Of a DNA stretch of 64,000 nucleotides, positions 3,130 to 64,000 are shown one piece after another. The translations under genes and the position numbers were made by a program. Under the pieces are notes generated by a model. It searched no databases. It was not told the origin of the DNA and worked only from the letters and a program-made list of their open reading frames with translations. Positions within the stretch are counted from its first letter, which is position 1, and each line of letters begins with the position of its first letter. This stretch comes from Phallusia mammillata (lineage: Eukaryota). The stretch is taken from the NCBI GenBank assembly GCA_965637545.1, contig OZ281499.1:14074001-14138000 (forward strand), in the 5' to 3' direction.

Positions 3130-5557
3130 TCACTTACACCTCGGTAAAACCATTTTTTTAATGTTTATTTTTGCATTGATTTTGTTTAGCCATTTGTCTT
3201 CGGCTAAATCCAGGTCAGCAGTACGTGGCTGTTCAACAAACACGGCACAATAGCAACTTTCAATTGATGGCTTTTTCGCAAACTCGTTTGGGTGTCGTTC
3301 TTTATAATGGTTTAAAAGCGCCGTCCCATCATCGCGCTGCGAAGTGTCAAACTTCGCCCAAATGGCGCGGTGACCCCACCACCGAGTTGCAAACCGATTT
3401 TTTGTCTGGCCTACATATTGTTCTTGGCATAAGTTGCAAGTGGCGACGTAAATGCCATAACTCCTACATGTCAGATGTTGCAAGATCTTAAATCTGCGCA
3501 TCGGGGTTTGCAGAAATGCGGTATTTTTAACCATGCCGGTTTTGTGGTTTCCATGGTTGCCACATAGAGCACAATGCCCGCAGGGATAGCATCCTAATGG
3601 AGCGCAATGGTTTAGTTGCCCTAAAGCAAGTTTCCTAGGGCGTAAAAACAGTTGTTGTAGGGAGGGTGGTCGTTTATATGTCACCATACAGTTGGGTTTA
3701 AGTGCCCTTTCTTTATCTGTAAGGTGCAGTAGCGCTGGAAATTCGGAGCCCAAACGAGTTTCTTTGGTCTTTCCTTTACACACGCAGGCCCCACGAGAGG
3801 GGGGTGCAGCCGGTGCGCCGCACCGGGGCCCATGAGAGTCTAGGGGGCCCATAATTATTAAGTTGAAGATTACAGGGTGATGAAATGTGCGCGAATTTTA
3901 GCGAGATCTCTTATTGATGTTTCTACTTTATTGTGCCACAGTTGTGTCCGTTGTTTGGTAAGAATTATGCACATTTGCGCTGACTACATAGTGCTGGTGA
4001 GTTTTCTGGACGTAGCATTTGTTACACGTATTTGATTTGGTCACAGCTTTGGTAGTAAGCGAGGTACTTTATTGGATCATATTTGTTAACGTACATAAAC
4101 GATAAAGCGACAGTTATGTGTGTGTGTGTGTGAAGACGTTTACTTTGCTCTCTGCCTTCGACCCTTCGTATTAACATTTTTAATTGGTCTGTACGTACCT
4201 GTGAAAATTACCGTCAAAGCAGTTATTATTTTAAACAAATTAGCAGTAATGGGGTCTCATGTCCGACTTAAGTCACATTTTTCGAAAGCTTGACTTGACT
4301 TGAGTCTTCTCAGCTGTGAAAAGTCTTGGCTTGACTCGGTATACCAACAAAAACAGGAAATCTTTTACCTGATAACCTGTTCAGTTGGCTTTAACCAAAC
4401 AATAGCAGAACTTTACTGTGCGATTTGTAGGTATTTTTGTTGGTATACCGAGTATATATATTTTATATTTTTGTGGTCATTTCATCCGGCCCTCGACCAT
4501 ATTTTTTGGTTTGCGAAATCGTATTGGTAACTTTGTAACATTCAAAAATTAAACTACTCCCTACGAAAGTTTTCCTGTCGCGATATGTGGAATTGATATT
4601 ACCTTGTTTCATAAGATTACAACGCCTATGATTGATTCAAAGCCAGTTTGTTACATCACAGACAAGACTACAAGTGCTCATTGTGCGCAAACAATTGCCT
4701 TCCTAGGTTACTTGTGACGTAATATACAAGCATTGCTCGTAAGATGAGACTAACTATATCAGGGGACGGCAACCACTGGCACGCGTGTCAAGGTTGGCAC
4801 GCTAGGAGGTATTTTATGGCACGCCAACCGATTTGTGTGTTTACATTGAAGTAACAATTTAACCTGTTACACTGCTTGTTTATAGTTTTTATCATGCCAT
4901 GGTCTTAAAATTCAGCCTTTGGCACGCGTCGCCTAAAAGATGGTTGCCGACCCTTGAACTGTACAGTTTAACAGTCGCATTACCAGATTTTGGGATTGTA
5001 GAAATACCATGTCTTGGCGCTGAAAAAAGTTTGTGGTGACCCCTGGTTTAAGCGAACACAGTACATGTCAAGACCAATATTTGCTTTTGAGCGTTTACTT
5101 TGTTGTACGAACGCTATAGTGCATGCAGTAAAAATAATTTTAGGTTTTTAAAACTGTAAAGGTTTGACGTTATTGTCCAAGCTGTTTAATGAGTGCGGCT
5201 AGCTTGCTTTTGTTTGTTCTTTTGGCGAATAAACGTATTAAACGCTTGATCATCAGCACACAAATAGTGTTCAAAGGGGGGCCCAGAAATTGACTTGCAC
5301 CAGCATATTTTTTTTCTCTCCAGGGCCCTGTACACACGTACTGTTCTTGGAGTGCCTTCTGTATTCATAACGCTGATCTTTCCAAGCTTTTGCCTCTTCA
5401 ACTACAGCAGCAGTCATTCTTTTGGAAAAACCCGAGCAGCTCGCCTTTAACTGCAACCTTTTCAGGCTGTTTGTGTAATCTGCATACAACTGGTTAAGAT
5501 ATCTTAGCCGAATCGCGTCACCCCGTACAATGGACCGAAAAGTTGGGGGCTTCAACA
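3130..5557 (-). pseudogene. PLE ORF C-terminal half (RT thumb + Cys-rich linker + GIY-YIG endonuclease), interrupted
   Basis: PPTFRSIVRGDAIRLRYLN...KAW in 5331-5557. After removing 3785-5330 and one TSD copy it continues KERPKKLVWA [frameshift] EFPALL...YKRPP...CGHCALC...YGIYVATCNLCQEQYVGQTKNRFATRW. Homologous to the 9822-11177 ORF. Confidence 0.85.
3785..5330 (+). mobile_element. Non-autonomous hAT element (~1.55 kb), copy 1
   Basis: 8-bp TSD TACACACG at 3777-3784 and 5331-5338. Termini CAGGCCCC.../...CAGGGCCCTG. Second copy at 42675-47217 in inverse orientation. Contains an older MITE at ~4760-4956 that is present in both copies. Confidence 0.9.
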
Positions 5558-9821: not shown

Positions 9822-11177
9822 TTACCTCACGCGCGGCAGAATCATTTTTTGTATGTTAATTTCGGCCTTGATTTTGTTCAGCCATTTATCTTCAAAAATA
9901 TCTAAAAGATTGGGTGAAGGCATTTGCACAAACACAACAAAAAAACACAGGTGGATGTGCGGTTTACGCTTTAATATCGCACTATGGTTCTCCGCGTAGT
10001 GGCGCAGTAGCGCAGCTCGGTCATTGTTTGCCGAGCAATCGAACGTTTTCCAAGTGGCGCGATGGGTATTCCACCGTGTGGAGAACTTGTTCTTGGTTTG
10101 ACCAACATATTGCTTGCCACACTTGCGGCAAGTGGCCACATAAATGCCGTAGTTGCGACATGTTAGATTTTGGCAAAGTTGGATACTGCCTGTGGGCGTT
10201 TTTAAAACGGTGGTATGGTACACCATAGTTTGGTGACTACCAAAATTACCACATAGTGCGCATTTTCCGCATGGACTTGAAGAGCCTGTGCCGTTGTCTT
10301 TGCCTGCCTTACCGATGGACAAAACTTTGAAGTTGGATAGAAAGTGTGCCAGTGTGGGTGGCCTTTTGTATGTAATGGAAGCCAAAGGTTCCATAGCTTT
10401 CTCTTTTTGAGTTAATAAAACACAAGCAGGGAATGCCGTAGCCCAAACAATTCGATTTTGAGGTCTATTTTTGTCTTCCGGCCCAAACCTTTCTTTCCAA
10501 CCCTCTGCGATGTGTAGCATGTCTTCCGTCATTCCTTGATGAAAACCAGAGAGCAAGCACTTCTCCCTGAGTCTGTTAAGACTGTTACGGTAATCTTGGT
10601 CTAGTTCGTTTAATCGACGCATGCGAATCGCTTCGCCAAAAACTATCGATTTAAAAACCGACGGCGGGTGGTGGGAATGACCGTTTAGAAAACTACGTCC
10701 TTTTGCAGTTGGTTTGATGTAGTCCCTTGTTATGAAACCTTTAGGTGAACTTTTTGTTGTGATGTGGTTTACGTCAAGAAACTCCAAAGCCTTGCCTTCC
10801 TCCTCAGTTGACACTGCCCTGAACGTAAGTGTCAGCCCGTAGTTTTCAAAACCCTTTTTAAGTGAAGTTTGTACTTGTTTCGTATTTTCGCTCCCGGATG
10901 ATATCCATAATATGTCATCTATGTACCTTTTGAAAAGATGAACACCACATATCACATCCCTGAGTGACTGAACGATGTAGTGGACGGCAATGTTTGCAAC
11001 CGAAACTGAATGGTTGACGCCTGTGACAATGCCGCTAGTTTGCCTATAGTAAGCATCCTTGAACTCAGTCACTACATTACTCAAGCAGAACATAACAAGT
11101 TGAGTGAGTAGATTTCTTCCTTTGACGCTAAAATTGGTATGTGTGCTCAAAGCTGAAGATAACGCTTGCTTTACCAA
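9822..11177 (-). CDS. PLE reverse transcriptase (partial) + Cys-rich linker + GIY-YIG endonuclease, 451 aa, 5'-truncated
   Basis: YRQTSGIVTG, RYIDD, LEFLD, HHPPSVFKSIVFGE, CGKCALC, YGIYVATCRKCGKQYVGQTKNKFSTRW. No internal stop. The N-terminal RT is absent, so this is not a complete gene. Confidence 0.9.
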   Translation of the reverse strand: MVKQALSSALSTHTNFSVKGRNLLTQLVMFCLSNVVTEFKDAYYRQTSGIVTGVNHSVSVANIAVHYIVQSLRDVICGVHLFKRYIDDILWISSGSENTKQVQTSLKKGFENYGLTLTFRAVSTEEEGKALEFLDVNHITTKSSPKGFITRDYIKPTAKGRSFLNGHSHHPPSVFKSIVFGEAIRMRRLNELDQDYRNSLNRLREKCLLSGFHQGMTEDMLHIAEGWKERFGPEDKNRPQNRIVWATAFPACVLLTQKEKAMEPLASITYKRPPTLAHFLSNFKVLSIGKAGKDNGTGSSSPCGKCALCGNFGSHQTMVYHTTVLKTPTGSIQLCQNLTCRNYGIYVATCRKCGKQYVGQTKNKFSTRWNTHRATWKTFDCSANNDRAALLRHYAENHSAILKRKPHIHLCFFVVFVQMPSPNLLDIFEDKWLNKIKAEINIQKMILPRVR

Positions 11178-25189: not shown

Positions 25190-26300
25190 ACAACAGTATG
25201 TAGAAAAAAATTATTAATAAATGAGTCGAAAAAGGTCGAAGTATTTCATTTGGACAACATTTAAGTAAAACTGGTTATAACAATGACTACTAACTAACAC
25301 ACTTGCTATTCAGTCATTAATATGGTCATGTATCATTTAAGTACCTTATAGCCACAGTCAGCATTTTCAACATATTCCATTACACGTCACAGATTGTAAT
25401 TGCCACACAAAAAATAGCCATAAAGCTTTTTCCTTGTATCATAACTGACAAATTCAACAACCACATTACATTTGCGTCAGAACTTGTTTATTCAACATCT
25501 TTTCTAATTTCTTGTGTACAACTATTAATTGTTTGTAAGTTTCTTAACTGCTAAACTTGCTGCTTTATTTGGTGGCAAATAGCTTATAATTCCTTTTTTG
25601 AAGTACAAAACTCTGCAAGGTTTGAAAATTACAACACTCTCACTTAAATTTAAACCATATTATTAAACCTTGTGCTTCTATTTTACAACCAAAATGAATC
25701 ATAAAGCTATAGTTTAAGCAAAATAATTGATAGCTTCTTCCTTGATTTCCAAATGACAACCAAGAAACTGTTTTTTTTCTATTTAGTGCTATCACTGCAA
25801 GTGCAATTCTTTTTGGAAATAATGGTGTTCCTTAGAAAAGTTTGCATCCTTTTCAGTGTTGACATCCTTTTCAAGAACCGTTTTGCCTTTGAGAGACTCA
25901 TGGAAATGGCTGGCTAACTGGCTTTTCCTTTTAAAGTTTCAGTAACTTTTCTAACAACAGGATATGTTTGGTGGTCACTACTATCTCCCCTGTAGAATGT
26001 TCACTCTTCAGAAACATTTTCTGTGAAGCAATTTAGCAGCTACTGTTTAAAGAAACATAACATGTCCATTATATCAATACACATGATTGCACTTGGTTGC
26101 AAATACTGTCCACATGGTGTGTTAAGAAACCAAAACTTGAAATTGTCATCACTAAGGTATTTCAAACTTCCTGTTGCTTGTGCAATTGTTTGTTCTGCAT
26201 TTAATATTGCCTGAATTTCAGTGAGGCATTTAACTTCACAGTGTAAGTAGTTCTTGTGGTTGCGATGTTTTATCCCAGTTTTCTTAACTTTTTATTCAGG
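25190..26300 (-). pseudogene. Heavily decayed hAT-like transposase relic (ZMYM1/THAP12-like?)
   Basis: ATGSLKYLSDDNFKFWFL..QYLQPSAIMCIDI resembles the hAT AxGLLxxL..F.F..L..LQ...DI segment. Many stops. Confidence 0.35.
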
Positions 26301-26790
26301 TTTTTATTATAAAGGTTAATCGTGACTTTTCAAAGTGTTAGATCAAAGAGATTATAAAACATGAGTGGAACCTCTGACGTAACAATGGACTTTTCCTTCG
26401 TCCTCCGTCACGGTTCAGTGCATAGAAGTTTGTTCAACATTTTGTGTGTCGTTTGCAAAACGAGCCGTATGTGTTTGTAATTAACATCGCATGTTGCGAA
26501 TTTAGTGCGAAAGGCAAAAAAAATCGCCTATAGCAGTATGGTGGTACTAAATGTTGTTTATTTTCGTTTATTCGCACTCTTCTACGGACGGGATGGCAAG
26601 AGACCTTGGTTTCATTTAGTCAGCCACTGCTGATATACAAAGAAGCAAAGGGACTAATTCCATCTTACAAAACTGTAAAAAAATGCTTTATGAACATCAA
26701 GCAAATTAGGTCTTTGCTTAAGTTTTGCGTTTACATGCTTAAAGTTTTTACGAAAAAATGTAAAATTTCGTGCAAAAATAAACCTTTCTT

Positions 26791-26963
26791 ATATAAGCTA
26801 TTGCTGCCAGGCATAGTATCAAGTTTAAAGAGCTCTTCTGGCAAATGTGATTTTATTCCGACGTTTCGACGTCCTATACAGGTCGTCTTCATCAGGGTGA
26901 ACCTGATAGGACGTCGAAACGTCGGAATAAAATCACATTTGCCAGAAGAGCTCTTTAAACTTG
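26791..26963 (-). mobile_element. 173-bp PLE-derived mini-insertion: hammerhead motif plus inverted copy of its own 3' half
   Basis: 13-bp direct repeat ATAAACCTTTCTT at 26778-26790 and 26964-26976. 61-bp perfect inverted arms 26817-26877 / 26906-26966 with a 19-nt loop. Confidence 0.8.
26858..26897 (-). ncRNA. Hammerhead ribozyme motif (PLE-type, GAAACGUC core)
   Basis: Minus strand: CC-CUGAUGA-A-GACGACCU(GUAU)AGGACGUC-GAAA-CGU-C-GG. Stem II is 7 bp with an A.A mismatch, stem III is palindromic ACGU, triplet GUC. Stem I is only 2 bp here. Confidence 0.8.
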
Positions 26964-29900
26964 ATAAACCTTTCTTGCAAAATGACTTTCATAAAGCTTC
27001 TGTTATAATCTTTAAATTCTGCAACCAGCAAAGATAAGTGCGATTTTTTAACGTTCTTGAACTTTCATTACTTGCCAGGCATGCAGTCTGATAAGCTCTA
27101 ACAGGGCAAAAAAGTTCAATTACTTATTTTTTTAATAAACATGTCTAAGCTCTTTTGTTTACACATTGTGATATCTGGATGCCATAATTAATTAGATTTA
27201 ATGTTACTTGCAAAAGATAAATTTTCACAGCTGTCGGACACTGTTACAAGTTGTTTTATTTCTTGGAAGACAGCAGCAAACAACCAAAGATTGAATACCC
27301 ATCAACGTTAAGTAAGTTTTAGGCAACTACCAGCACAAAAGAAAGTGATTTAAACTTGTACTTTAAAAGCTTTTGAGCTCTTTTACAGGCCTAAATGAGC
27401 ATAACAGAAGTTCAAAGTTAATTTGACGACGAAGTTCAGCTTTTTTTCAAGTGTTTGTTTGTTGTTTATTCTGAAATTGCAGTGAACGCCAGAGGAAAAA
27501 TCAGCAATACTGAGAAGTTGCATGTCAGGGATATCACCATAAGGCACTTAGTCCATGAAGCACAATGGTTAGCAGCCTTCTTACACTACCAACATGAGTG
27601 AGCCACTGAGTGAAAGCTTGATAGTCTGTCTGGAAATGATTGTAAACTGATAAAGTTCGGTGTTCTGTTTTACACAAAACATTTCAAACATGCCTTGAGC
27701 TTATATTGTATGTATCATACAGTTCATGGCTTTGTATTTCATTTTTGATACTGGCTCCACACAATATTCCAACTGTTCATATTCAATATTTAGATCGGAT
27801 TGATACAACAACAAGAAACAGAAGTATCTGTAAAATAATAAAAAATAACACAGTATTCATAGTATAAATCTGTTACAAAATGTAGCATTAAAAAACAAGT
27901 TATCATGCACTCTTGTCATATTATTTTGTTTTCATAATCAAAACTGTTTGCTAATGGAAAGTTTGTAAGTTTTAAAAATATAACCCCTCATATACTTACA
28001 TGCCTGACAAACTATTTATTTATTAGTCATAAAAATAACATAAGTTCTACAGTGGGAAAGTACATGGCTTTGTCCGTACTGAACATATGTTAAATCCATC
28101 TTTCAGTTAAATATCATGTGAAACAAGCCATCCTAAAGGAAGTTAAAAAACGTACAAATTACCGTACATTGCAAGATAACTTCATTTTCTCTCATTTGAG
28201 AGTACCACATGTGAATTTTGCCAAATTCATGTCACTTTATTGGGGTAATAAACCACTCTAAGTACATATCTCAACTGAAAAACTTTGTCATAATACCTGA
28301 GATGCTTTATTGTAGAAAACCAACCCAGTGACTGTCTTGAAACTTTGACTTACTCGTTTCACATTATACTATATATAGCCATCTTATATCGCAGTTTTTA
28401 TAGGTTTTACAAAAATACTACAACCATAAGACAAAACGTAACATCATTTTTCAGCCAACAATTAAATCCTAACGCCTGACGACCGAATATCTCGTTTTGA
28501 ACTAGCTTGCAGTCTGCTATCCTGTACATACAATTTCAGCGAAAAACATGCAAAACTTCTATGCACTGAAGCGGAACGGCGTACGAAACTAAATTACGCT
28601 TAACAATGCAAATAGTCACGTGACTTGCCGAAGTTTCATCTCATGTTTTTAATACTCTTTGGTTAGATGACCTTTTTCAACACTTTCTAATTCAATGATA
28701 ACTGCAAAAACTGAAGCCCACTTACAGTCATCTTAAAAATTCACGACTAACCTTCAAACAAATAAATTAAAAAAGGTAAAAAAATTGTTTAACTGTACTG
28801 ACCGTCAAACCTAGAATATAGCAAACGGGTTTGGTTTTGGAGCACAATATAGACCCGGAACAGATAACACAACTACAGCGGCCGGTTCACACGCTGCGTG
28901 ATTGGTGGAGCTGCGCGAGCCGCAGCACCAAGTCGCCTATTTCGCCCGGCATGTAGCTTTTCCAAGTGCGCATGCGCACAAGTGCAAAACGTCACGATTC
29001 GTCATGAAACTGGAGCTGCAGTTCCACCATAGATAACATATTAATGCCATAATTTTTTTTAAAAAATGAAAACAATGCCGATCAAGGCGGAAATTATACT
29101 TAGGTTATCTGTATTGTTGTGGTAGGAATAATAGGTGAAAATATCTAGGGGGTGCTGCAGCTCCGCAGCACCCTAGCACGAGCCGCCCCTGCAAATGATA
29201 CAAAATAAGTCTACTTTTCATGCAGTCCAAACAGCGCAGTTTAGTTTTTTCCATATGTGTATTTGTTGACATTTGTGCAAACATTTCAGTTTACGGAGAG
29301 GCCAGGAAGAAAAAACCTTGAGCGCATTGCTTATTTGGTTGTTTCCAAATATCCAACATCATTCAGAGATGTTATTGGAGGCATTCCTATGGGTGATGGC
29401 CACAACTCAATTGCAAACCAGCTGTACTACAGATGGGAAAACGTGATACGCAAAAAAAGAAAACTGCAGCATTTATCTGATGTCCAAAGTTCTGCAAGTA
29501 AAAAAACTCCGTATGGTGTCAAAAATTGGTTGGTTCCAAACAAAACCCAAAACCGAACTTCTTTGCAAAATTGGTTATTGGAAGAGTTTAAAAGAGCAAA
29601 ATCTGAATGGGATATGCAACATACCAAAAACCTCATGAAGCAAACTTACTTCATGCAACGGGAATTAATTAATAAAAACTCCCCTGTCCAAATGGTGCTG
29701 ACACAATGGCCATTTTTGACAGAGGCCGAGTTTTTACTTTTCCATTTTGGGAAGCTATTGGAAAAAGACCACGCAGAACATCTGCCATCAACCATTGCTC
29801 ATCGCAGCATGGAGGTGTATAGGTGAGCAAAGTGGAATTATTGCACTTTTGGTTTCTCATCTACTTTGTTGAATCTTGCTTCAGGTCACTAAAATTAAAT

Positions 29901-38045: not shown

Positions 38046-39399
38046 TTGCCCCCCCCCCCCCTTTTTATTGTTTTCTATGGCCTCATAGAATGGTGCAAAC
38101 ATAACAACAAGATGAAAAGAAAACTACGCAAACCCAATTTCCATTACTTAATTGCGACATCTCGCGGCGAGTATTTCCTAGCGCTTTTTCGCTTTTGTTT
38201 ACCACATGTACCTACTAAATTCTGCTACAACAAAACCTCCTAAAATATGATGGTGTTGTTGCATTCTTTTGGTTGTGCTTCATTTATGCGATCTGCAGTT
38301 GTTGAAAGTTATAAATTAGACAACTAAACAAAAGTTTTGTTTTACCCACCGTTCGTATCTTGCTTCCTTTTGTTTCCTTCCATGTTATATGTCCAATTTT
38401 CCTACTTTTGCACCACCTCATAACCAAAAGACTTAACTTAAAGGAAAAAATTATACGCTGCTGTGCTTTATAACCTTTATGTTTTGTACTCTTTTGTTTT
38501 CAATCAGTTTTTTCCCTTTGGTTGTTTCGTGTGTTGTTTTTCGCAATACAAAAAAATCGTTCAAACACAGCTCACTTCAACACGAGCAAATCTTTCGCCT
38601 TTTACTAAAGATTTCCGTGGAGTGGGGTATTTTCAAGAGTCTTTGCTATTTGTTCGTTCCAACACAAGTTTTCGCAAAATGTTATGACACTTTTGGCACG
38701 AAAACACGTGAATACGAACGGAAACTTGGTTTCATAACAACTATAGGAACAGAATATGTTTTGATACTTTTTCGTCAAAACCATTCGCGTGAACGCGAAG
38801 GAGGTTTGGGAACATGACGTAATCTTATGGTTGAATAGCCACGATTTGCACGATTTTGCCAAAACGTCGACCGTTCATTGCCCGTGGTTCCAAACTTGCA
38901 CGTGTCGGAAAAGATGTGGTGTTAGGGTGTTTATGGGTGACACTAAAACGCTGAATGGGCGGGAGATGGGTGGCGGGACGTCGCGAAAACCGCTAAATAT
39001 CGGGTAAATTGCTGACGGTTAGTGCTATAAGGGTTGGGTTGAGGTTTTACAATAGTATATGAATCAAAAAATGTCCCTGCCTAAAACTTATTCAGCTGTT
39101 TCCTGACATTCAGAAAAAATGCTTGGGCGGGAAGTCTCCCTCGGCCGCTTAATGTTTCCCTCGGTCGCGGAATGTATCCGGGGGAATTATTTTTAATGAT
39201 TTTCTATTATAAAACGTTATCCAAACCGCTCACTCGGTGAACATTTTGGTTTGGGAAAGTCAACAGTCTTTGAGGTACATATGTATTAAAAACAGCAGGT
39301 AAAATGGACACACTCGCATGGCTTATCATACTAATAGAATTTTTTTTTTTTTTTGAAAAAAGGTTACTATTGAAGTGTGCAAACTACAAAAGTAATTGT

Positions 39400-45310: not shown

Positions 45311-46728
45311 TTACAGTCGATTAACTACATTATTTTGCCATGAAAGTTTGCCATTTTCTGACAAGAAATAATCCTTAAATGTATCCCTAATTAGAGCAGC
45401 TTCATGAGCATACATATTTGTACCCATTCTACCTATGGGTTGGAAGTTTGAGGAGTTTTGAATTTCATATCGCCATTCTCCAAATATCATATTTCCCATT
45501 CTGTCTTCCCGGTCAACATATGTTGGTGCACAATACATTCTTTCATTTTCCAAAGATTGCCTACTTTTTATCTGTAAAAAGTTATGTAAACAACAGGCAG
45601 CTTTTGTTATGGCAATTGCTTTTTGGGGCTCAGCTATAATAGATCTTCTGAATATTCGCCAGCGAGTGGCTAAAATACCAAAGGTATTTTCAATGACCCT
45701 TCTGGCACGTGATAGACGGTAGTTAAAAACACTTTTATCAAAAGGAAGTCTCTTTCCTGGGTAGGGTCTCATTAGGTTGGGTCTTAGAGGAAAAGCAGCA
45801 TCACCCACAATACAGTAAGGGACAGTTATATTGGTTTTTGGAATACATTCAGCAGCAGGCATATTTAAATCATCATTCATAAATTTTTTACCGTATTCAG
45901 AATTGGCAAAAACACCCCCATCACTGTGTCTGCCCGAATCACCAATATCTAACAAAGTAAAGCAATAATGTGCATCACATACAGCCATTAATACAATGCT
46001 ATGTGTTCCCTTGTAGTTAAAATATTCAGATCCAGCATTTTTGGGGGCCTGAATGACCACATGCTTGCCATCTATGGCACCTAAACACATTGGAAAATCC
46101 CATAAATCATCAAATTCCTTTGCAATTATTTTCCATTCTTCTGAACTTTGTGGGGGTTTAAGGTATTCTGGCTGCAATACAGACCATATTGCTTCACAAG
46201 TTTCATTGATGATTTGGCACACAGTTGAATGGCCAACTCTGTAACTCAAGGAAATGGTTGCTTGAGAGTCCCCGGTGGCCAAAAACCTGTAATAAATGTG
46301 GTCATATTAAAATAATGAACTTGCACATTAATCAACAAACAAGTAAAACCCACCTTAGCGTAATTGCGAGTCTTTGTGCAGATGAAATTGATTTTCTCCA
46401 GTGGGTATCCTTTTTGCTGATCAAAGGTTCTACTTTCTGGAGTAGTTCATAGAAAGTTTGCACATCCATTCTAAAGTACTTGTGAAAGCTTTGATGGTCA
46501 TTCTGCATGTTTTTCACCAAGTTAAACTCACCCATTTCTTCTCTGTCCTGAAAGATTGGACGAACCCATACTCTGCATATAAACTAAAATCCTCAACAAA
46601 TTGATTTAGGCACTTTGATAGTGAAATATGTCTTACCTTCTTGGGTAAATAATGTTGCGAACAAGTATCATGATAAGAATCAATTGCTGTTCCAGCAACA
46701 ATAAAAGCAGTAGGTCAATTCTATCCAT
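45311..46728 (-). CDS. Harbinger DDE transposase, 3 exons, 428 aa, apparently intact
   Basis: Exons 46728-46637, 46572-46354, 46286-45311 (1287 nt). RVWVRPIF, FRMD..TF..LL, LAITLRFLATG, GAIDGKHV, YFNYKG..SIVLMAVCD, SDGGVF, VGDAAFPL, RARRVIENTFGIL, LHNFL. Confidence 0.92.
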
Positions 46729-54282: not shown

Positions 54283-55384
54283 CTATAATAGGTTTCATCA
54301 TACAGTAAAGTTTCTTCATTCTCCTCTTTATCATTGCACTGAATACTTGCACGTTTTATTCTAAAGACATGATACAATACAGTGTTTAAAATATGGTAGC
54401 CAGTTAAAAACCTCTAATGCTTTTTTTACATTTGCTCCTCTATCAGACACAAAAGTAACTGATTTCATCAACTCCATTGTAAAACCATACTTTATTAAGC
54501 TTCTTACCAATTCGTTTGTAATATAATCTGCAGATTTAACAGATGGAGAAAATTGCTCACAAAATATGGCACTTTCTTCGATCCACTGTGCAGTACATGA
54601 CATATAGCTTTGTTTTTTATGGCTATCTGTCCATAAATCAACAGTCATGCCGACTCCTCCATTGCAATGTATAGCCTGATTTAATTTTGCAATCAAATTA
54701 CCTCTTTCCTCTGCTGCTGACTCTTACATACTTGCTGATGGTATTTCTTGAAGGCAAAACACCTGAAACATTCACCTGTCCATATTTTGCGCCTACATTG
54801 ATTAAAGTCTGTGCAAAGTTCTTCATTCCACTTCATTCTTGTTCCACATGTCTGGCTAAGTGGGTTGTGCCTGTCGTGTGGCTAATATACTTGAAACACT
54901 TCAAGCACTGTCTGCATGCTAACATCGGAAGTTGTTTGGAAGCCGAAGATTCTGCTCCTGCCTTCTCTGCCACTATGCCAAAAGTGTTCCAAATGCTAGA
55001 TTTTCCGCATTTTTTTTATAATACAGAGCTCGCCTGCCTCCAAACTTTTTTTGACTTAGCAAAAATACCAAAAAAAAAAAAAAAATTGATAACAAAAAAA
55101 TCGAATAACCCTAATTTAACGTTTACGTGTACTCTAAAATTCTAAAGGCATACAACCAATTGTTATTTCACAATAGCTCTGCTTAATCATGACAGAAAAA
55201 CGTATCAAACCTGTGTACATAAAAGTTGAGAACTTCTTTAAAGCAAAAGTAATTACACAAGTTGCACGGCGTGCGGCATTGACGCTGCATAAAAATTTAT
55301 TAATGCCGCGGCCGCGCATAAAAAAATACCTCAAAAAATTGCGCGGCCGTCACGGTAGAGCTACTAACGGAGTGCCTCCTTGGA

Positions 55385-55920
55385 CAGTGGTTCTCAAACT
55401 TTTTTGTGCGCGACCCAAATCTGAGCTTTATGAACTTGTTGCGACCCAAGCCTCAAACATCAAAATATGTGTTTTTTATTTCTTGTAACTTACGAATACC
55501 TACTTGTCCTTGAATGCTAACTGTTACATCTCAAGTTCAGTTTCGCATGATTAACCTCGTATCATTCCCCGTGCTAACACGTTACAATCGCCGTGTGCGT
55601 AACCGAATGTTGGAAGGCTATTGTCTGTATGTTGTAATGATTGGTTCATTTTGCCGAACAACGTGGTCGAGTGAGGCTGTATTTCGCTATGGTAGTACAG
55701 TAGCTGGGTGCCATCTAAACTCTCAGAAAACCACTTACTTATGATGCAATACTCCAAGGTTACGAAGATAAAGCCACATAAAATGCGTTAGTTACAATAA
55801 TTCAGTCATGACTAGGAATTGGAAATACTTGAAATGAAAAAGTTCATTTAGGCAGAAATTGAATCACCATAGCGCGACCCATTTTTTTACCCTGCGCTAC
55901 CCATACTTTGAGAACCAATG
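55385..55920. mobile_element. hAT MITE
   Basis: TIR CAGTGGTTCTCAAA / revcomp CATTGGTTCTCAAA with GCGACCCA subterminal motifs. No TSD found. Confidence 0.7.
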
Positions 55921-56297
55921 GGGAGATCCAAAAGTGCTTAATTTTCGATAGGTGGCGCAATGGAGCATTCACGCCAAAATGAAAAAAAAAAAAAATTCGC
56001 GCCAAACAAAAATTATTTTATAGAAGGGTTTGATTTAGTATATTTTTTTTATCTGTTTTTAAACTATCTGGTTTGATTTAGTATATTTTTATGTGTTTTG
56101 ACTGTCTGCATTACAATAATGCATTTCAGGTAAAAATTGACATAAAGTTAACAAACTGTAATGTGGGGAAAATTTGTATGGGGGATGGGGGAAGTGAAAG
56201 GGGGGGGTAGGGGAATTAAAAGACAGAGTTGGAAAAAAGTAAGTGTTAGATAGTTTGAACAGTTGAACATAAAATTAAATTGTTGTGTTTGTTGCAG

Positions 56298-57308
56298 ACG
56301 AAAAAACCAATTAATACTGGCAGACAAAAACGGTGAGATTTTATGATGAAATGTTTTGTGTGTATTTCATGGTTAATGTATTCATTATTTTTCAGATTCA
56401 TACCGTACAAAAAAATTGTACGCCTGCAAAAGTAAGTGAACTATCTTAAATGAATTCAAATTTTGATGAGAAAATAATTTTACACATAAAACATTTATTT
56501 GTAGGCAAAATATAATTCCTCGACATTCAAGGTAAGCTACAACATTGCATAAATTTTTTCTTGCCTATATGACAAATTATATTGTTTGCAGATGGCTATC
56601 CAGGCATTTATTTTTTTTAAGGTTTATTGTTTGAAGTAAGGTTGATTTTTGTAATATTTGATGAATAGAAAGTTGTAACAGTACTACTAATGGCACACTA
56701 TGTTTTTTTACACACAGGGAGAACAATAAAAGTAACTCAAACTGTAAGTTTGTATTGTAGACTTTTTAACTTGCAAATGTTGTAACAGTACAACTAATGA
56801 CACACTATGCTTTTTTACACACAGGGAGAACAAATAAAAGAAACTCAAACTGTAAGTTTGTATTGTAGACTTTTTAACTTGCAAATGTTGTAACAGTACT
56901 ACTAATGACACACTATGCTTTTTTACACACGGGGAGAACAAATAAAAGAAACTCAAACTGTAAGTTTGTATTGTAGACTTTTTAACTTGCAAATGTTGTA
57001 ACAGTACTACTAACGACACACTATGCTTTTTTACACACAGGGAGAACAAACAAAAGAAACTCAAACTGTAAGTTTGTATTGTAGACTTTTTAACTTGCAA
57101 ATGTTGTAACAGTACTACTAATGGCACACTATGCTTTTTTAGACACAAGAAGAAAAAGTGGTTTGAATGTAAGTATGGGTACAAACATCTTTCAAAAAAT
57201 ATTCTTATACTAAACTGTTTGTGTGCTTTGCAGAAAACAAGGAATAAAAGTTTATTAGCAGTTTGTGGCTGTATGATATTTGATGACAGTTTAGGACAGA
57301 AATGGTGA
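56298..57308 (+). other. Putative microexon gene (about ten exons of 26-44 nt, 60-82 nt introns), product unknown
   Basis: Successive YAG|exon|GT(A/G)AG blocks at 56298-56332, 56396-56431, 56505-56531, 56592-56635, 56718-56743, 56825-56851, 57041-57067, 57143-57168, then a last exon from 57234. Confidence 0.6.
56672..57140 (+). repeat. 108-bp tandem repeat, ~4.3 copies; each unit is a 27-nt microexon plus an 81-nt intron
   Basis: Period measured from ACTTTTTAAC at 56761, 56869, 56977 and 57085. Each unit contains GTAAGT, TACTAA(T/C), a T-tract and CAG. Confidence 0.92.
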
Positions 57309-57742
57309 AATTTTTTTGCAAGGTGTTTAAAAAAATTGTGAGAATTCCAACCACACCCATGAGGCTCTCATTCGTGGTCGTTGGCATTTTTGTTTACCCA
57401 GACGCCTCGCCAGTAGCCATATGAAACTGGGGGTTCTTAGAACCACACCATTTGAGCGTTCGAGCCTTTAGTTTTAGCAACCGTCCTAGGCTTTCGGTTA
57501 ACCACATCTTTTGAGCGTTCAAGTCTGCAGAAGACAGATTGGTTAACCACAACCAGTTAGGCGTTTAAGCAAAAATGCTTATTGGTTAACCACACTCAGG
57601 CGTTCAAGCAAAAAAAAGCTGTTCATAAACAAATGAGCTTTTCGGACATTGGAAGGAATATTACCATCTCTTTCTTATTGAAAGCCAAAAAAATAAATAA
57701 CACAAATTGCACTAATTTTTGCGCAACCGGGTGACATGGCAA

Positions 57743-60700
57743 TTAGGGACAAATGAACCTTTTGTCTGAAATAGGACACTGCGAAATGTCAAAGCAACTG
57801 GTGTGAAAACCTTGTTTACATCTCATACATGTAATCCAGTCACTTTTCGCCATGCCGATAGTTTTTACATGTTTGTCAGTCCCACACATTTTACATTGAT
57901 CTCTCTCTAGTTTGCCTTGAAGGCAGTTACCAGATATAAGGTTAATATCACACACCAATCACCAATTGGTTTTGAATGTCAACTGCCAAAAGAATCCAAT
58001 GGCGGTGTGAAGGGTTCCATGGAATAAAAATAAGCTTTTTATCGATTAGAGACATATCATGCCAAAGCTTTCCAATAGGTCTCATATTTTCCAGGAGTTG
58101 TGCCATCATAGTACAAACATACAATGTATGGTTGTTGGCAGACACTATTTGCCACAAATAGCTGTCAATTACATCGCCAAACAGCCATCCAACTACAAAG
58201 TGTTTGTCAAATATTTTTAAAAGTTGTTCTTCAAGTTTTGGTAAAGTTTGTTCCAGTGACTTTAACTCCAAAATTGAAAGCGAATGATGTCCATTTACTA
58301 AAATCTTTTCATTGACTTTGTACCTGTTAAGGCTGTCCAAACTAGGTGTAAAACATTTTGACCCTGTTGACAAATTGACCGTTCCAGAAGTTTCGTTGTA
58401 TACTGGGGACGGCAAAGTAGTCACTTGGTGCAGTTGCTGCATAGTATTTGCAAAAGCTCCCACTCTTGATGTAAATGGGTTTGTCTTTGGTCGTTTACGG
58501 GGAAGCTCATCACCACTATTAGACAAAGGCATCTTTCTTTTTGTTGCACCAAACTTTTGTTCTGAAATTTGGGAAATTCTTACATGTTTTTAATGTCACT
58601 TAACAAATCATTAAATTTCTTTTTTTTTTAAATTACAAATCATAAAAGTATTTGTGGGTGACTTTTTAAATGTCTCTGAAGACAGTAAATAAGTTTCAGG
58701 AACATCAGAGATGCAATTACTTGCTATAGCTTCTTCATCTGATTTTGTTGCACTTATATAGTTCACAACATTTGGATCCAACACCATGTGAACAGAGTTG
58801 TGATACCATTCTGGTAAGCTGGACCAATCAACATCATCATACTTGTTAAACACAGCAAACATGTGCTTGCATGGCAAGAAGTGTCGTGTAAAATCTGCAC
58901 ATGTGCATTTGGGAAATTCATCCCTTGATCCAAATTGAACGGTGTATATTTGGTTAGTAGAATCACTTTTAACTTTTTTGATAAAGTACTTCTGAAGTTT
59001 AACATTATCTAACCAAAATACACTGCACTGAAAATTTGTTAATGCTGTTTGATAACTTTGCTCGCTTTCAGCACTTGCTATAGCTCTCATAAATGCTAAA
59101 ACTTCATCTTTGTTATCTCGAACTCCATTTTCTGACTTTTTCACCCAGCGCTCCCATACTTGCTCACGATGAAAGTCGCAAATTAATACATTGCAATTTA
59201 CAAAAGTATTAAATTAATACCTTATTCTTGTCACTAAAAATGTATATACCCCCATGTTCAGCAATAGAAAGACATATAATTGTGCTTACCTGAAAATACA
59301 CTTTCAATGGCATGTATTTCAGCATCACATTTGTCTGTCATGAAAAATGAAGGTTTCCAGGCAAGTGTCCATTTTTAAAAAATTGAAAGAGCTTCTTCAA
59401 TATTGATTTGCCTTTCATTTTAAGTGATAAAACTTGCAACAACCTGGTAGTTTACGTTTGTCTTAACACACAAAAAAAATAAGGGCAGAGCATACTTCCG
59501 ATGTTTTATAAGTGGCATCAAGTAACGAAATGTCTTGCCCATAACGAAGTAGAAGTTTGCGCTGCCAATGAAATTAATGGACAAATAGCATGGTTTGTTC
59601 GGAAGCAATTACAGGAGCTGTTATTTCATCGGTAAGATCTCAAGAAGTGTTTTGGTAGAACTGGAAAATGGCCGAGAAAAGATTTTGTCTTCTGGATCAC
59701 CAGCCTTGACCCACTCATCAACCAAACATTGGACATTTGTCTGATCCATTTTTGCAAGCTTACGTTTTAAAAATGACCTGTAGAAGTGACTCTCAACATC
59801 CTTTCTTGTTGGAAAAAATCTCCGGTTTGTGCTTGATGGTACATCATCATTTTTAAACAGCTCATGTATCACAAATGATTTTAAGCCTCTCATAATCTCC
59901 CCAATATTACACACACCTTCATTCACCATTTCATCAATTTTTGTAATGATTCGTTTGTCAACCATTTGAAGAAATCCTGCTGACTAACCCCTGGCACTGT
60001 GGTTTTTTTCATGGCACGCCAACCAATTTGCGCGTTTATATTAAAGTAACAATTTATCCGGTTACACTGCTTGTTTTCAGTTTTTATCATGCCATTGTCT
60101 TAAAATTCATCCTTACATGCACAAAACACACTGCTTTCTCTTTATCATCAATATTTGTTGGCACGAATCACTATAATTTAGAAAAACGTTGGCACGCGAG
60201 GTCATTAACACATGGAAATAACAAGTAAATTGGCACGCGTCGCCTAAAAGGATGCCGACCCCTGCAATACGATATCCAACAAATTGCAAGTTTTTTTTGT
60301 TTAATTTTGATTTTTGTGTTTGGAAAACATACTTCTCCAATAACATGGCCAACATGACCGTCGCTGCTTGGAAAGGCAATACTACAGGCACGTTCCTTCA
60401 ACAGAGACTCATCACTATCTTTTAAAGCCTTGCGAATAAATTTAGCTGATTTTTTCCTTTGGTGTTCTGATCTGGTGACTTCCTGATATTAAACAAAGCA
60501 AAAAATAAAATTTGTCATACTGATAAAGCATTAATATACTTACACAAAATTGGGGAAATCTCAGCACTTCCTGTATAAATATTTTTGCTTCGCAATTGCA
60601 TTTTTTTGTACCTTGAATACACATCTTTTTTTGGCAGGATTAGGATGGTCAAGTAACTATAAATGGCGACAATGCTATTTTAAAAACCTTGCTTGTAGAT

Positions 60701-60830
60701 TGAGCCATGAGACACCATTATACCGGATTGGGAATGCATGGCTTGCGTTTATCATTTCCTTCTTTGTTGTAATCTTTGCCATGTTGGCACTCCAGCCACA
60801 CACTTTGTACAATAACATATGGGACTAAAT
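57743..60830 (-). pseudogene. MULE transposase-fusion gene: CaRF-like domain, DDE core, SWIM, Ulp1-like, PHD; multi-exon, frameshifted
   Basis: WLECQHGKD, GTKKCNCEAKIFIQEVLRFP, HVGHVIGE, DKRIITKIDEMV...NRRFFP (CaRF-like); LLDATYKT..LPLFFLCVKTNVNYQVVASF, FMTDKCDAEIHAI, CDFHREQ (MULE); CTCADFTRHFLPCKH (SWIM); WLFGDVIDSYL..IPWNPSHRHWILLAVD (C48/Ulp1-like, partial); CKMC..WITCMRCKQGFHTSC..FICP (PHD). Confidence 0.8.
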
Positions 60831-60917
60831 CTTTTCCCCAGTGTACATTACCTTTTGAGATATCTGTGCATAAAAATGAAACATTACCACTTTTATACAT
60901 ATAAATATTTACTACTG

Positions 60918-61883
60918 CAGGGGTGGCCAACCCGCGGCTCGCGAGCCGCATGCGGCTCTTCGCCTGGTTTTATGCGGCTCTTAAGTTTTTGTCGAAGTTT
61001 GGAGCCATTGTGTATATTTGGGTAAGTATGTGGCGATCTGGTACAAAAATCGTTAAATTTAAAGTAAAGCTTTAACAATTTTGCTTTTGAACAAACTTAT
61101 TATCGGCATGGACACAAACCTTGCCTTAAAACTGTAACTTTATGTGGCAAACGGCTTGATTATGATGGCATATATTTAATTGTGAACAATGAATGGTTGC
61201 TCATTGTTGCGTACAATGCGAATGAGACACGAAGCAACAGCGATATTTACAACAAATGTGTTCCAAAGTAAATGCTTCAATCCGTTGTTTTTCGGGTTAT
61301 GACGAATGTTATATTTTATCGGTAGTTTGTGTTGGGTTTGAATTGAGCGATTGTGGGTGGTGAATGCATTAATGACGTCGCAATGAATTTAGTTTCGCCA
61401 CTTTGCACTTGGGGCACATGCGCGTTAGGTGTTTGGGGCGCGTGCGCGTTAGATGAAAATACCGCAAGTTTTTTCAGCAGGGAAAATCTTTTAAATAAAC
61501 AATTTTGGTCAAGTTAGCCTTCAAATTGGCAATGAAAAAATATTTTAGCAATTCACCAGAAATGAATCTCAAATGAAAAAAGGGGTATTTTAATTCATAT
61601 GTTTTTGTTTGATGGATTCTTTGAAATGAGAGTTTTGAGTGAGAGACAGTGTTTGCACTGACCATTTATTGTTGAAAATGACTGGCCCGTGGTCTGTACA
61701 AGTCAAATTGTGTCATTATTATGTTGGTGTGCGACATTTAGAATAGATCTGGCTAAGCACAGGTCTCCGTGTGTGAGGAAGGGACGAGTCATTTAACAAA
61801 TGTGCTTATGTGTATAATGTGGCTCTTTGTGGTAACACAATAAAAAATATGGCTCTTCGGCTTTGACCGGTTGGCCACCCCTG
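60918..61883. mobile_element. hAT MITE (966 bp)
   Basis: TIR CAGGGGTGGCCAACC, 8-bp TSD TACTACTG (60910-60917, 61884-61891). Confidence 0.92.
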
Positions 61884-61907: not shown

Positions 61908-64000
61908 TGTTGACAAAATTATCAACAATAAACATACCATGGAACTTTTTTGAGTATTAAGCGTGTCCGGTTAAGAATGAGCCGTGACACGCCCAAACGA
62001 GACAGGTAAACACAACGCAGGAAAAAGGCAAAACGAGAAAAAAGGCGTTTCTTGCAAACGTAATGCGTGTCGTCACCACACAGCTCCCCCCAGAAACGAC
62101 TTTTAAATTTTACGAGGACGTCCCCGTTTTTTTATATTTGGGGTTGGCAAAGGCTGCGAAATATCAATTATTGCTGGCTTTAAACGGTCAATAGACACAG
62201 TTTGTTGCTTTCCCCGACATCTAAAACAAAATATTTTTCATTGCGCTGTCGAACCTTAAAAGGACCTTCATAAGGAGGATTTAGTGGAGGTTTGTAAGAG
62301 TCCTTACGAACGAAAACAAGTTGACACTGAATAACAATTGTGGTACAGAATGTTTAGGGTTACAATGGCGTGATGTTGGCACTGGTAGCAATCTCGACAG
62401 TGCCTTGCGCAACGTTCGCACATATTCGTTCGGCAGGGGTTCTTGGTGTGTAGGTGGAATGAAATCTTCTGGAATTGGTATGGTTGAGCCGTACACCAAT
62501 TCTGCACTGGAGGTCTTCAGATCTTCTTAGGGTGAAGTGCGTATACCCAAAAGCACCCATGGTAACTCGTCGCACCAATTTACGTCCTTAAGTCGTGCAA
62601 CTAATGCAGTCTTGAGGTGCCGGGGAAGCGTTCAACCAGGCCATTCGCCTGTGGGTGAAATGCGGTAGTGCATTGATGTTTGGTGCCCAACATTTGCTTC
62701 CACAGACTTCCTTCCACAGATTGGACGTAAATTGTGGTCCTCTGTCTGATGTGATAAGACTGGGAACTCCAAATCTGGCGATCCAGTGAAAAGCTATTGC
62801 CCTTGCACAACTAGCGGTTGTGGCTTCTGCCATTGGAACTGCCTCCGGCCATCGTGTATAGCGATCGACTATTGTAAATAGATACTTTGCACCTCGTGAT
62901 TCAGGCAAAGGGCCGACAATGTCTACATGTATGTGGCTGAATCGTATATTTGGAACAGCAAACTCTTCCAGTGGCGCCTTCATGTGACAATGAATTTTCG
63001 ACCTCTGGCATTCGATGCATTGCTGCGCCCATAAGCGAACTTCTTTGTTAATTCCATGCCATGCAAATTTGTCGGACATAATCTTCTGTGTAATACGCAC
63101 AGATGGGTGACATAATCCGTGTATAGCATTAAACACCTTTCGCTTCCAGCTTGAGGGGACTATTGGTCGGGGAGAACCGGTGGATATGTCACATAATACA
63201 ATAGTTTGCGAAGGACCAATGGAAACATCTTCTAAATCCAGCGATGTCACAGCTGTGCGATATGCTTCAACTTCGTCACAATGTTGAGCTTCTGCTAACT
63301 GATGGTAATCCAAATCGATTGTTTGTTGTCGGACTGATGCCATGTATGACCGAGAAAGGGCATCTGCTACGACGTTGTTCTTGCCTTTTGTGTGCTGCAC
63401 ATCAGTTGTATATTCAGAAATATTTGTCAAATGCCTTTGCTGTCGAGCTGACCAAGGTTCTGCGACTTTTTTAAAAGCAAATGTCAATGGTTTGTGGTCG
63501 GTGTATGCTGTGAATGCTCTTCCTTCCAAAAAATAGCGAAAGTGTCGAATTGCTAGATGCAAAGCAAGTAGTTCTCGGTCGAACGTACTGTATTTCTTTT
63601 CAGCTTGTCTTAATTGACGACTAAAAAACGCAAGAGGCTCCCAGGAGCCATTAACCTTTTGTTCTAGTACCCCGCCTACAGCATGATCGGATGCGTCCGT
63701 GGTTAATGACACAGGTGCTTGTGGCTGCGGGTGAACAAGTGTCACTGCTTTAGCTAAAGCATTTTTCGCCTCATCAAAACTAGACTGCAGTTCTTTTGTT
63801 TGGGCTTTTTTTATAGAGCTTTATAAATGGGTAGCATAATGCTTGCGGCCGAAGGAATAATGCGGTGGTAGAAATTTACCATTGCTGCAGACCTTTAATT
63901 GTGTTTGGGCGTTGAAAGCGTTGAATGGCTGCTACCTTGCTTGTCAGAGGTTTAGCTCCGTTTGCATCAATGTGATGACCAAGAAACTCAATGTGAGTTT
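61908..64000 (-). mobile_element. Gypsy LTR retrotransposon (CsRn1/Kabuki-type), 3' part; runs off the window
   Basis: PPT GGGGGGAG at 62091-62084, LTR starting TGTGGTGAC at 62080. The far LTR end near 61908 (TGTTGAC on plus) is tentative. Pol lies upstream. Confidence 0.85.
62140..64000 (-). pseudogene. Gypsy pol: RT end, RNase H and integrase; frameshifted
   Basis: FLGHHI; TDASDHAVGGVLEQ, EKKYSTFDRELLA, TDHKPL, NVVADALSR; HGLCHP...CIECQ; HVDIVGP, IVDRYTRWPEA, SDRGPQFTS, HPQANGLVER; VSIDRLKPA. Confidence 0.92.

Follow-up and report, generated by a model that had tools for sequence, protein, structure and literature searches.

What kind of gene is built from a chain of exons each only a few tens of nucleotides long? 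The question is raised by positions 56100–57300 of a 64 000-nt stretch of the Phallusia mammillata genome (contig OZ281499.1; the whole stretch is called the window below), where donors of the form GTAAG or GTGAG and pyrimidine-rich AG acceptors follow one another across introns of 59–82 nt and the short exons measure 26–44 nt. An initial annotation, made from the letters of the DNA, had proposed a microexon gene for a small, very basic protein, with a host gene, an accessory gene of a transposable element (TE), or a spliced non-coding RNA as possible identities. Our analysis indicates that the locus is very probably a decayed member of a family of protein-coding microexon genes carried as passengers, or second genes, by DNA transposons.

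All parts of the gene lie on the forward strand. A conserved TGCATTTCAG acceptor (56120–56129), 6 nt upstream of the ancestral start codon, is a candidate spliced-leader trans-splice site; it is kept in the window, in copy L002, and in the hAT-type copies L005, L006, L010, and L011, and an AG is likewise present 5–11 nt upstream of the ATG in copies F and G. The start exon, e0 (56136–56238, followed by the donor GTAAGT at 56239), for which the initial annotation had found no firm candidate, was recognised through alignment of nine paralogous copies; its limits draw on 11 aligned and translated copies and on an ORF scan of the spliced model, and its ATGs at 56161 and 56185 share the frame of e1–e4. 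There follow e1 (56298–56332, 35 nt, with the basic segment TKKPINTGRQK), e2 (56396–56431, 36 nt, RFIPYKKIVRLQ), e3 (56505–56531, 27 nt, KQNIIPRHS), and e4 (56592–56635, 44 nt by alignment and lengths), which includes a run of eight T residues at 56611–56618. The next part of the gene is an array of exon-plus-intron cassettes (56672–57154), in which TRF counts 4.5 copies of a 108-bp tandem unit that are 96% identical, each unit consisting of an 81-nt intron and a 27-nt exon. The array exons are e5 (56718–56743, 26 nt), e6 (56825–56851, 27 nt, GEQIKETQT in frame 0), e7 (56933–56959, 27 nt), and e8 (57041–57067, 27 nt, GEQTKETQT), the last of which is joined without an intron in the processed copy L013 described below. 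In the same frame 0, the penultimate exon e9 (57143–57168) reads TQEEKVV up to a TGA stop (57164–57166). The last exon, e10 (57234–57265), is 3′ untranslated sequence with an AATAAA at 57243–57248; the processed copy ends with GCAGTTTG and then 10 A residues, which implies a poly(A) site at ∼57265, 17 nt past the AATAAA. The initial annotation had described nine short exons with canonical signals, and eight of the nine acceptors agree with that description; the remaining one, in front of e7, reads CGG instead of CAG, and for that reason e7 is probably skipped.

Genome-wide search with the locus retrieves at least 20 loci of common layout on contigs C3, C6, and C8. At least 10 of these paralogs repeat the exon–intron layout with all GT and AG dinucleotides retained at merely 55–88% identity, all GT/AG sites of e0–e4 being retained in 10 copies, and paralog introns measure 57–91 nt. 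Since the layout recurs with every GT and AG in so many diverged copies, the exon–intron pattern exceeds chance by far. The initial annotation had proposed a comparison of paralogs, asking whether splice sites and frame are conserved and whether the gene travels inside a TE. Both the splice sites and the frame of exons 1–4 prove to be conserved, and the copies do travel in TEs.

The mature transcript has left a trace on another chromosome. L013 (G000:C3, minus strand, 1583→1193) is a copy of 391 nt that lacks introns; along the minus strand it contains, in order, GGAGAACAAACAAAAGAAACTCAAACT twice, ACACAAGAAGAAAAAGTGGTTTGAAT, AAAACAAGGAATAAAAGTTTATTAGCAGTTTG, and a tail of 10 A residues, and it is flanked on either side by TGAAAATT, an 8-nt target-site duplication (TSD). 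Its final 112 nt correspond to e6/e8–e8–e9–e10, with junctions exactly as predicted; e8, e9, and e10 are 100% identical between L013 and the window, which in a whole-genome search is the sole intron-containing locus matching the 3′ exons of L013. The intronless joint is also found in DNA run X1. At its 5′ end (L013:1568–1583, minus strand) stands the 16-nt ATTCTATTTGAATAAG, the spliced leader published for Ciona (PMC1488885), which occurs 3860 times in the genome (reversed control, 0), a count in keeping with an ascidian. With its spliced leader, exact exon joints, A10 tail, and flanking TGAAAATT, L013 is the retrocopy of a trans-spliced, cis-spliced, and polyadenylated mRNA, and its structure shows splicing and polyadenylation of the gene. 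The microexon gene of the initial annotation is borne out. We had also considered L013 as a 5′-truncated retrocopy with a GAAAAT TSD, a reading dropped given the spliced leader and the TGAAAATT duplication. As a separate observation, 3860 copies of ATTCTATTTGAATAAG are far above expectation from spliced-leader RNA genes alone; many precede non-GT sequence, as in retrocopies or repeats headed by the leader, and two identical examples of this kind lie in locus F, adjoining the Mutator-like (MULE) sequence there.

L013 resembles processed pseudogenes of the LINE type in being intronless, with a poly(A) tail and a TSD, and its 5′ end is full, spliced leader included; it departs from them in 263 nt of 5′ sequence for which the assembly offers no recognisable source. 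These 263 nt (L013:1305–1567, minus strand), which separate the leader from the array exons, have no other genome match at E ≤ 10, show no significant similarity to e0–e4, and share no collinear 11-mers with the window. Since this part is unmatched in the assembly and not significantly like e0–e4, the RNA source of L013 may have been a lost or unassembled sibling, or a chimera, rather than the window locus itself. L013 keeps the family frame 0 open over 68 codons, and a database search with this 68-aa ORF gave no relatives. Array-like pieces (AEQLNEN, NAEKEN) occur within the 263 nt in frame with the tail, with three in-frame stops further upstream.

Is the spliced transcript a coding one? In copies A, B, C, E, F, and G, e0–e4 are open and encode 64–69 residues, with e0 of 66 or 81 nt, e1 of 32–36 nt, e2 of 36 nt, e3 of 27 nt, and e4 of 31 nt. 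The encoded head has the pattern ME..F.NC......M, then a basic stretch, then RF[IL]P[YF]..LQ[KR]...IP...[KR]WL.[KR]..F[FL]. The peptide that the initial annotation had read from exons 1–4 was reproduced, and its TKKPINTGRQKRFIPYKK...RWLS..FF portion is the coding frame conserved across paralogs. Its continuation fared otherwise. The phase after e4 is 0; the paralog array exons are 18, 24, 27, or 30 nt long, every one a multiple of 3, and in hAT-type arrays frame 0 (AATGTAGAAAATGAAACT) is open, with stops in both remaining frames. The proposed basic continuation (ENNKSNSNWRTNKRNSN...QKW*) lies in a frame other than the one frame open in paralog arrays, and its coding extension to 57306 runs past the mRNA end at the poly(A) site (∼57265), before which that frame has no stop. 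Nor did a ninth T at 56611–56618, offered as one way to reach that frame, find a counterpart: an X1 contig matching 56574–56665 without differences has eight, although X1 may be the assembly's own sample.

To define the complete product, we applied a splice rule that is blind to reading frame, in which each donor GTAAGT is paired with the nearest AG that follows a pyrimidine and lies 55 nt or more downstream. The rule yields complete ORFs of 116 aa in copy A, 114 aa in copy B, and 105 aa in copy G, and all three frames close within the penultimate exon, a few bases short of the final junction. A splice search that maximised ORF length had produced models over-extended through spurious sites, and homology-anchored models together with the frame-blind rule were used instead. 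The head has a pI of 10.4–11.2 and the tail, in A and B, a pI of ∼4.2. The family protein is thus predicted to be basic in its head and polar in its tail (acidic there in the hAT copies) rather than uniformly basic, as had been supposed. On inspection, the N-termini (MENFVFQNCTIQSITMREGGVKRKR.. and MEVNFNNCSVANLFMGGGGKK.., each followed by the basic region) have no hydrophobic core.

Substitution patterns argue that these frames are used. Between A and E, which represent two hAT-borne lineages, dN/dS is 0.16 (synonymous changes at 17/36 sites, non-synonymous at 18/156; Fisher p = 6e-6), with 8, 8, and 19 differences at the first, second, and third codon positions; between F and G it is 0.43 (∼11/40 and ∼22/167 sites; Fisher p = 0.03). 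On these counts, the family is under purifying selection. It is quite unlikely, by comparison, that the family as a whole yields a spliced non-coding RNA, or is just cis-acting transposon sequence, with open frames that are incidental. The third-position bias and the low A–E ratio speak against it, as do ORFs that persist intact though exons are only 55–82% identical, paralog array exons that are all multiples of 3, and a stop that always falls in the penultimate exon within a few nucleotides of the last junction. On its side are the A-rich, low-complexity composition, introns conserved at least as much as exons, a neighbouring non-coding block that is the most conserved part, and a blank in three probable RNA contig sets of the species, X3, X6, and X8, which have no contig on 55971–57338; this blank does not prove silence, spliced 27-nt exons being hard to match by contigs, and over 55800–57500 the contigs of these sets match flanking high-copy repeats only. 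The intron comparison is a peculiarity of the family. Identity between A and E is 0.82 in exons and 0.885 in introns (p = 0.045), and every pair compared leans the same way: in A/E, F/G, and A/F (L010, L005, L003, and L008) the short introns are better conserved than the exons, despite the concentration of changes at third positions. Constraint on the introns or faster synonymous change could each lie behind this relation, which is unusual for a constrained gene.

The protein-coding family is found in two kinds of carrier. One is a hAT element of 5033 bp with the terminal inverted repeat (TIR) CAGTGGCGGCTCGTGC and the opposite end GCACGAGCCGCCCCTG. Copies A, B, and C are 98.5–99.3% identical across a discrete unit of ∼5 kb, and their 8-bp TSDs differ (CATCTGAA, AGAAATAG, and GTGACCAC); copy A occupies G000:C6:22749869–22754901. 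The unit contains, in order, the microexon gene, a conserved block, and an opposite-strand transposase ORF of 644 residues with a DUF4371 domain (PF14291) and a hAT dimerisation domain (PF05699); 8-bp TSDs, short TIRs, and this dimerisation domain place the carrier of copies A–E in the hAT superfamily. In every hAT copy that keeps the 3′ end of the transposase (at least 13 loci), the gene or the block adjoins that end, and there are also short non-autonomous hAT derivatives without the gene. Array exon number varies even among elements 98.5–99% identical overall. A second, diverged hAT-family remnant (∼77%) lies within the window itself at 25710–29191, with its right TIR at 29176–29191, and no microexon module was detected beside it.

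The nearest database transposases to that of the hAT carrier are from arthropods, at 72–83% protein identity. In the carpenter bee (a 2.77-kb element with TSD GTAGAAAC) and termite hAT loci, the microexon gene is absent, and the TIR lies ∼170–200 nt from the transposase stop; an 8-mer at the Xylocopa locus that resembled a left TIR proved to be flank sequence. Since the related bee and termite elements lack it, the 2.4-kb module is an acquisition of the hAT family. The transposase (L029:1303–3234, minus strand; copies at G000:C6:22.75 Mb, C6:13.76 Mb, and C3:13.75 Mb) has its 72–83% protein identity with elements of a lanternfly, a termite, carpenter bees, and crustaceans, and nucleotide identity to the bee and termite copies is 78–81%; these values suggest horizontal transfer of the hAT element between arthropods and the tunicate.

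The second carrier is Mutator-like, and the window copy belongs to it. Window-type copies (the window, F, G, H, and I) adjoin a convergent gene with MULE, SWIM, Ulp1-like, and PHD domains. In the window this is a fragmented transposase gene on the minus strand (57743–60951), ALS2CR8/CaRF-like with SWIM, Ulp1-like, and PHD domains by Pfam search of its ORFs, of which the region 57966–59986 is collinear with G, H, and I at 84–91% identity; the internally deleted copy F is collinear with the window transposase region at 85–90% identity. Copy G, at about G000:C6:6.606–6.613 Mb, measures 6.7 kb and has 63-bp TIRs (98% identity) that begin with GGTAGAGCTACTAAC, a 10-bp TSD (CCCCTGCGAG), and domains PF10551 (MULE), PF21056, and PF04434; its long TIRs, a TSD within the 9–11 bp of Mutator-like elements, its MULE domain, and its SWIM finger assign it to that superfamily. 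The same 15-mer that opens the TIRs of G occurs once in the window, as an exact match at 55354–55368 (plus strand), and marks the outer end of the left TIR; the inner part (..CCAAAAGTGCTTAATTTTCGATAGGTGGCGCAA.., ∼55921–55970, plus strand) is separated from it by an insertion of ∼550 bp. The right TIR is not present in the window. A right boundary shared by the window and F at 60919 was examined as a TIR, and none lies there; a later insertion accounts for it, the true ends coming from comparison of G and H. A search for the MULE gene outside this species gave just two matches, both to short contigs. The suggestion of a TE accessory in the initial annotation thus had the right context, with paralogs lying inside hAT and Mutator-like elements bounded by TIRs and TSDs.

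Around the inner TIR part, the interval 55857–55970 has a summed contig depth of ∼200,000–265,000 in DNA run X1, against ∼270 in neighbouring single-copy sequence, or ∼750–1000 times single-copy depth, and it appears in the probable RNA contigs as well. It probably represents a large family of MITEs that arose from the MULE.

Between the microexon gene and the convergent transposase gene lies a conserved non-coding block of 283 bp (57338–57620, plus strand) with three to four same-strand repeats of the form (GG)TTAACCACA-N5-8-GCGTTCAAG. The block is 85–90% identical between MULE-borne and hAT-borne copies, against 55–70% for the gene itself. Its TTAACCACA-N5-8-GCGTTCAAG repeats occur nowhere else within the elements, and their number differs among copies. 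A search of the block against Rfam gave no match. The block also stands alone at dozens of loci.

An origin of the module outside the hAT family, implied by the bee and termite elements without it, would also be expected of a host gene fragment captured by transposons in the manner of Pack-MULE transduplication, without any role for the element. We regard this as extremely unlikely. Pack-MULE inserts have an identifiable transposon-free parent and usually evolve neutrally; here, no transposon-free parent locus is among the matches, and the copies examined lie in or beside hAT or MULE remnants. The gene has its whole coding sequence, start and stop included, and a poly(A) signal of its own, a second superfamily carries it too, and its dN/dS of 0.16–0.43 and its retention in every autonomous hAT copy examined fit a sequence under selection within the transposons. 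A second gene of the element accounts better for these observations, and since it is kept in two superfamilies while insect hAT relatives lack it, the distribution points to a gene that helps transposons generally rather than one transposase.

The copy in the window, unlike the intact paralogs, is degenerate. In e0, the ancestral ATG has become ATT (56136–56138), a TAG interrupts the ancestral frame, and the conserved N-terminal ME..F.NC motif is lost. Exon e4 is 44 nt long where intact paralogs have 31 nt; the additional 13 nt are an insertion that shifts the frame and leads to a TGA at 56632–56634. Exon e5 is 1 nt short of the 27-nt unit, and family frame 0 meets a TAA there. The canonical spliced model holds a single ORF of 72 residues, from the ATG at 56161, with a pI of ∼12; it ends in e4, with five junctions downstream. 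The window copy is accordingly best read as a pseudogene whose splice signals are largely intact. It would yield at best a 72-aa basic peptide, from an mRNA that would be prone to nonsense-mediated decay, given a stop in e4 with five junctions downstream.

That 72-aa ORF is nonetheless one ground for supposing that the window copy still works, making a short basic peptide (the 72-aa, or a 64-aa, head up to the TGA at 56632–56634) or, through a weak donor after 56621, a basic protein of 114 aa. An ORF of 114 aa does follow from the alternative donor, the splice sites of e0–e6 and e8–e10 are intact, and the changes of +13 nt in e4 and −1 nt in e5 offset each other in length and restore the family frame, with the TGA still between them; this compensation may be a sign that some selection still acts on the window copy. 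Continued function is unlikely all the same. The start codon and N-terminal motif of the ancestor are gone, and the e4 stop exposes the mRNA to decay. The donor needed for the longer product (AAG/GTTTAT) is weak and used in no paralog, and the frame that it opens lacks a stop before the poly(A) site and meets stops in the arrays of paralogs. An insertion interrupts the host element, of which only the left TIR lies in the window, and the nearest relative, L002, is itself broken, being truncated within e4.

A degenerate member of a coding family is thus the reading that we carry forward, and the intact layout would be as follows. Downstream of a probable spliced-leader trans-splice acceptor, e0 would supply the ATG and e1–e4 would complete a very basic head of 64–69 aa. 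A variable tandem array of phase-0 exons of 18, 24, 27, or 30 nt, each with its own intron of 68–82 nt, would then encode a polar low-complexity tail, a penultimate exon of 23–27 nt would hold the stop, and the last exon would be untranslated. The gene is placed close to one end of the transposon, on its inner side, and converges on the transposase gene, with the tandem-motif block between them, and the window copy occupies an old, interrupted Mutator-like element. The array presumably grows and shrinks through unequal recombination, and skipping of array exons would preserve the frame.

From its composition and context, the family product may be a nuclear accessory factor that binds nucleic acid or chromatin and aids the transposon. 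A more specific proposal, which we consider doubtful, is an accessory protein of a new type, exchanged between Mutator-like and hAT elements, whose basic head would recognise the TTAACCACA..GCGTTCAAG block, whose tail length would be set by the recombining array, and which would counter silencing or open chromatin as VANC proteins do. VANC anti-silencing proteins are encoded by the VANDAL (Mutator-like) elements of Arabidopsis (PMC5735166, PMC10398659), and they target tandem repeats that lie in the non-coding DNA of these elements (PMC5735166). Both VANC and the present gene are non-transposase genes of a Mutator-like transposon accompanied by a block of short tandem motifs in non-coding DNA; the present gene differs in its animal host, its microexon architecture, and its presence in hAT elements as well, and the two are likened by context alone. 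That the family protein might bind the tandem block, as VANC does, is pure conjecture.

Second genes are familiar among DNA transposons, including mudrB of MuDR, TnpA of En/Spm, and the Myb-like ORF of PIF/Harbinger elements; hAT elements are classically single-gene. Like these, the present gene is an extra ORF in an autonomous TIR element, kept through diversification of the family; unlike them, it is common to two superfamilies, encodes a protein of 105–116 aa with basic head and polar tail, and is built from microexons. To our knowledge, transposon accessory genes are well known in plants (VANC, mudrB, TnpA) and rarely described in animals, and our literature search on transposon-borne microexon genes found nothing relevant.

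The initial annotation had pointed to the microexon genes (MEGs) of schistosomes, which are host genes for secreted proteins with signal peptides and have introns of up to 5 kbp (PMC10526429). The likeness stands for architecture and goes no further. Both have the bulk of their coding sequence in very short symmetric exons (here those of the array; e1–e4 are short but not individually symmetric), both form multi-copy families, and in both exon skipping that keeps the frame is possible. The present gene, in contrast, has introns of 57–91 nt, tandem cassettes, and no hydrophobic leader, and it is borne by transposons rather than being a host gene.

We thus describe one small gene, made almost entirely of microexons, that purifying selection maintains in two unrelated superfamilies of transposons within a single genome. 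The locus also offers a clean natural example of expansion and contraction of a tandem exon-plus-intron cassette. For genome annotation it carries a warning, namely that the microexon “genes” of this family are transposon cargo and that the copy in the window is probably a pseudogene.

The surroundings of the locus are of similar character, the window as a whole being largely transposon-derived. Reverse transcriptase and GIY-YIG ORFs of Penelope-like elements lie at 9822–11177 and 3130–3852 (both minus strand), a Harbinger DDE ORF at 45311–46282, and a Gypsy-type RNase H/integrase ORF at 62588–63745. Within this transposon-rich stretch we also find a U5 spliceosomal RNA gene at 38563–38667 on the plus strand (Rfam RF00020, 65 bits).
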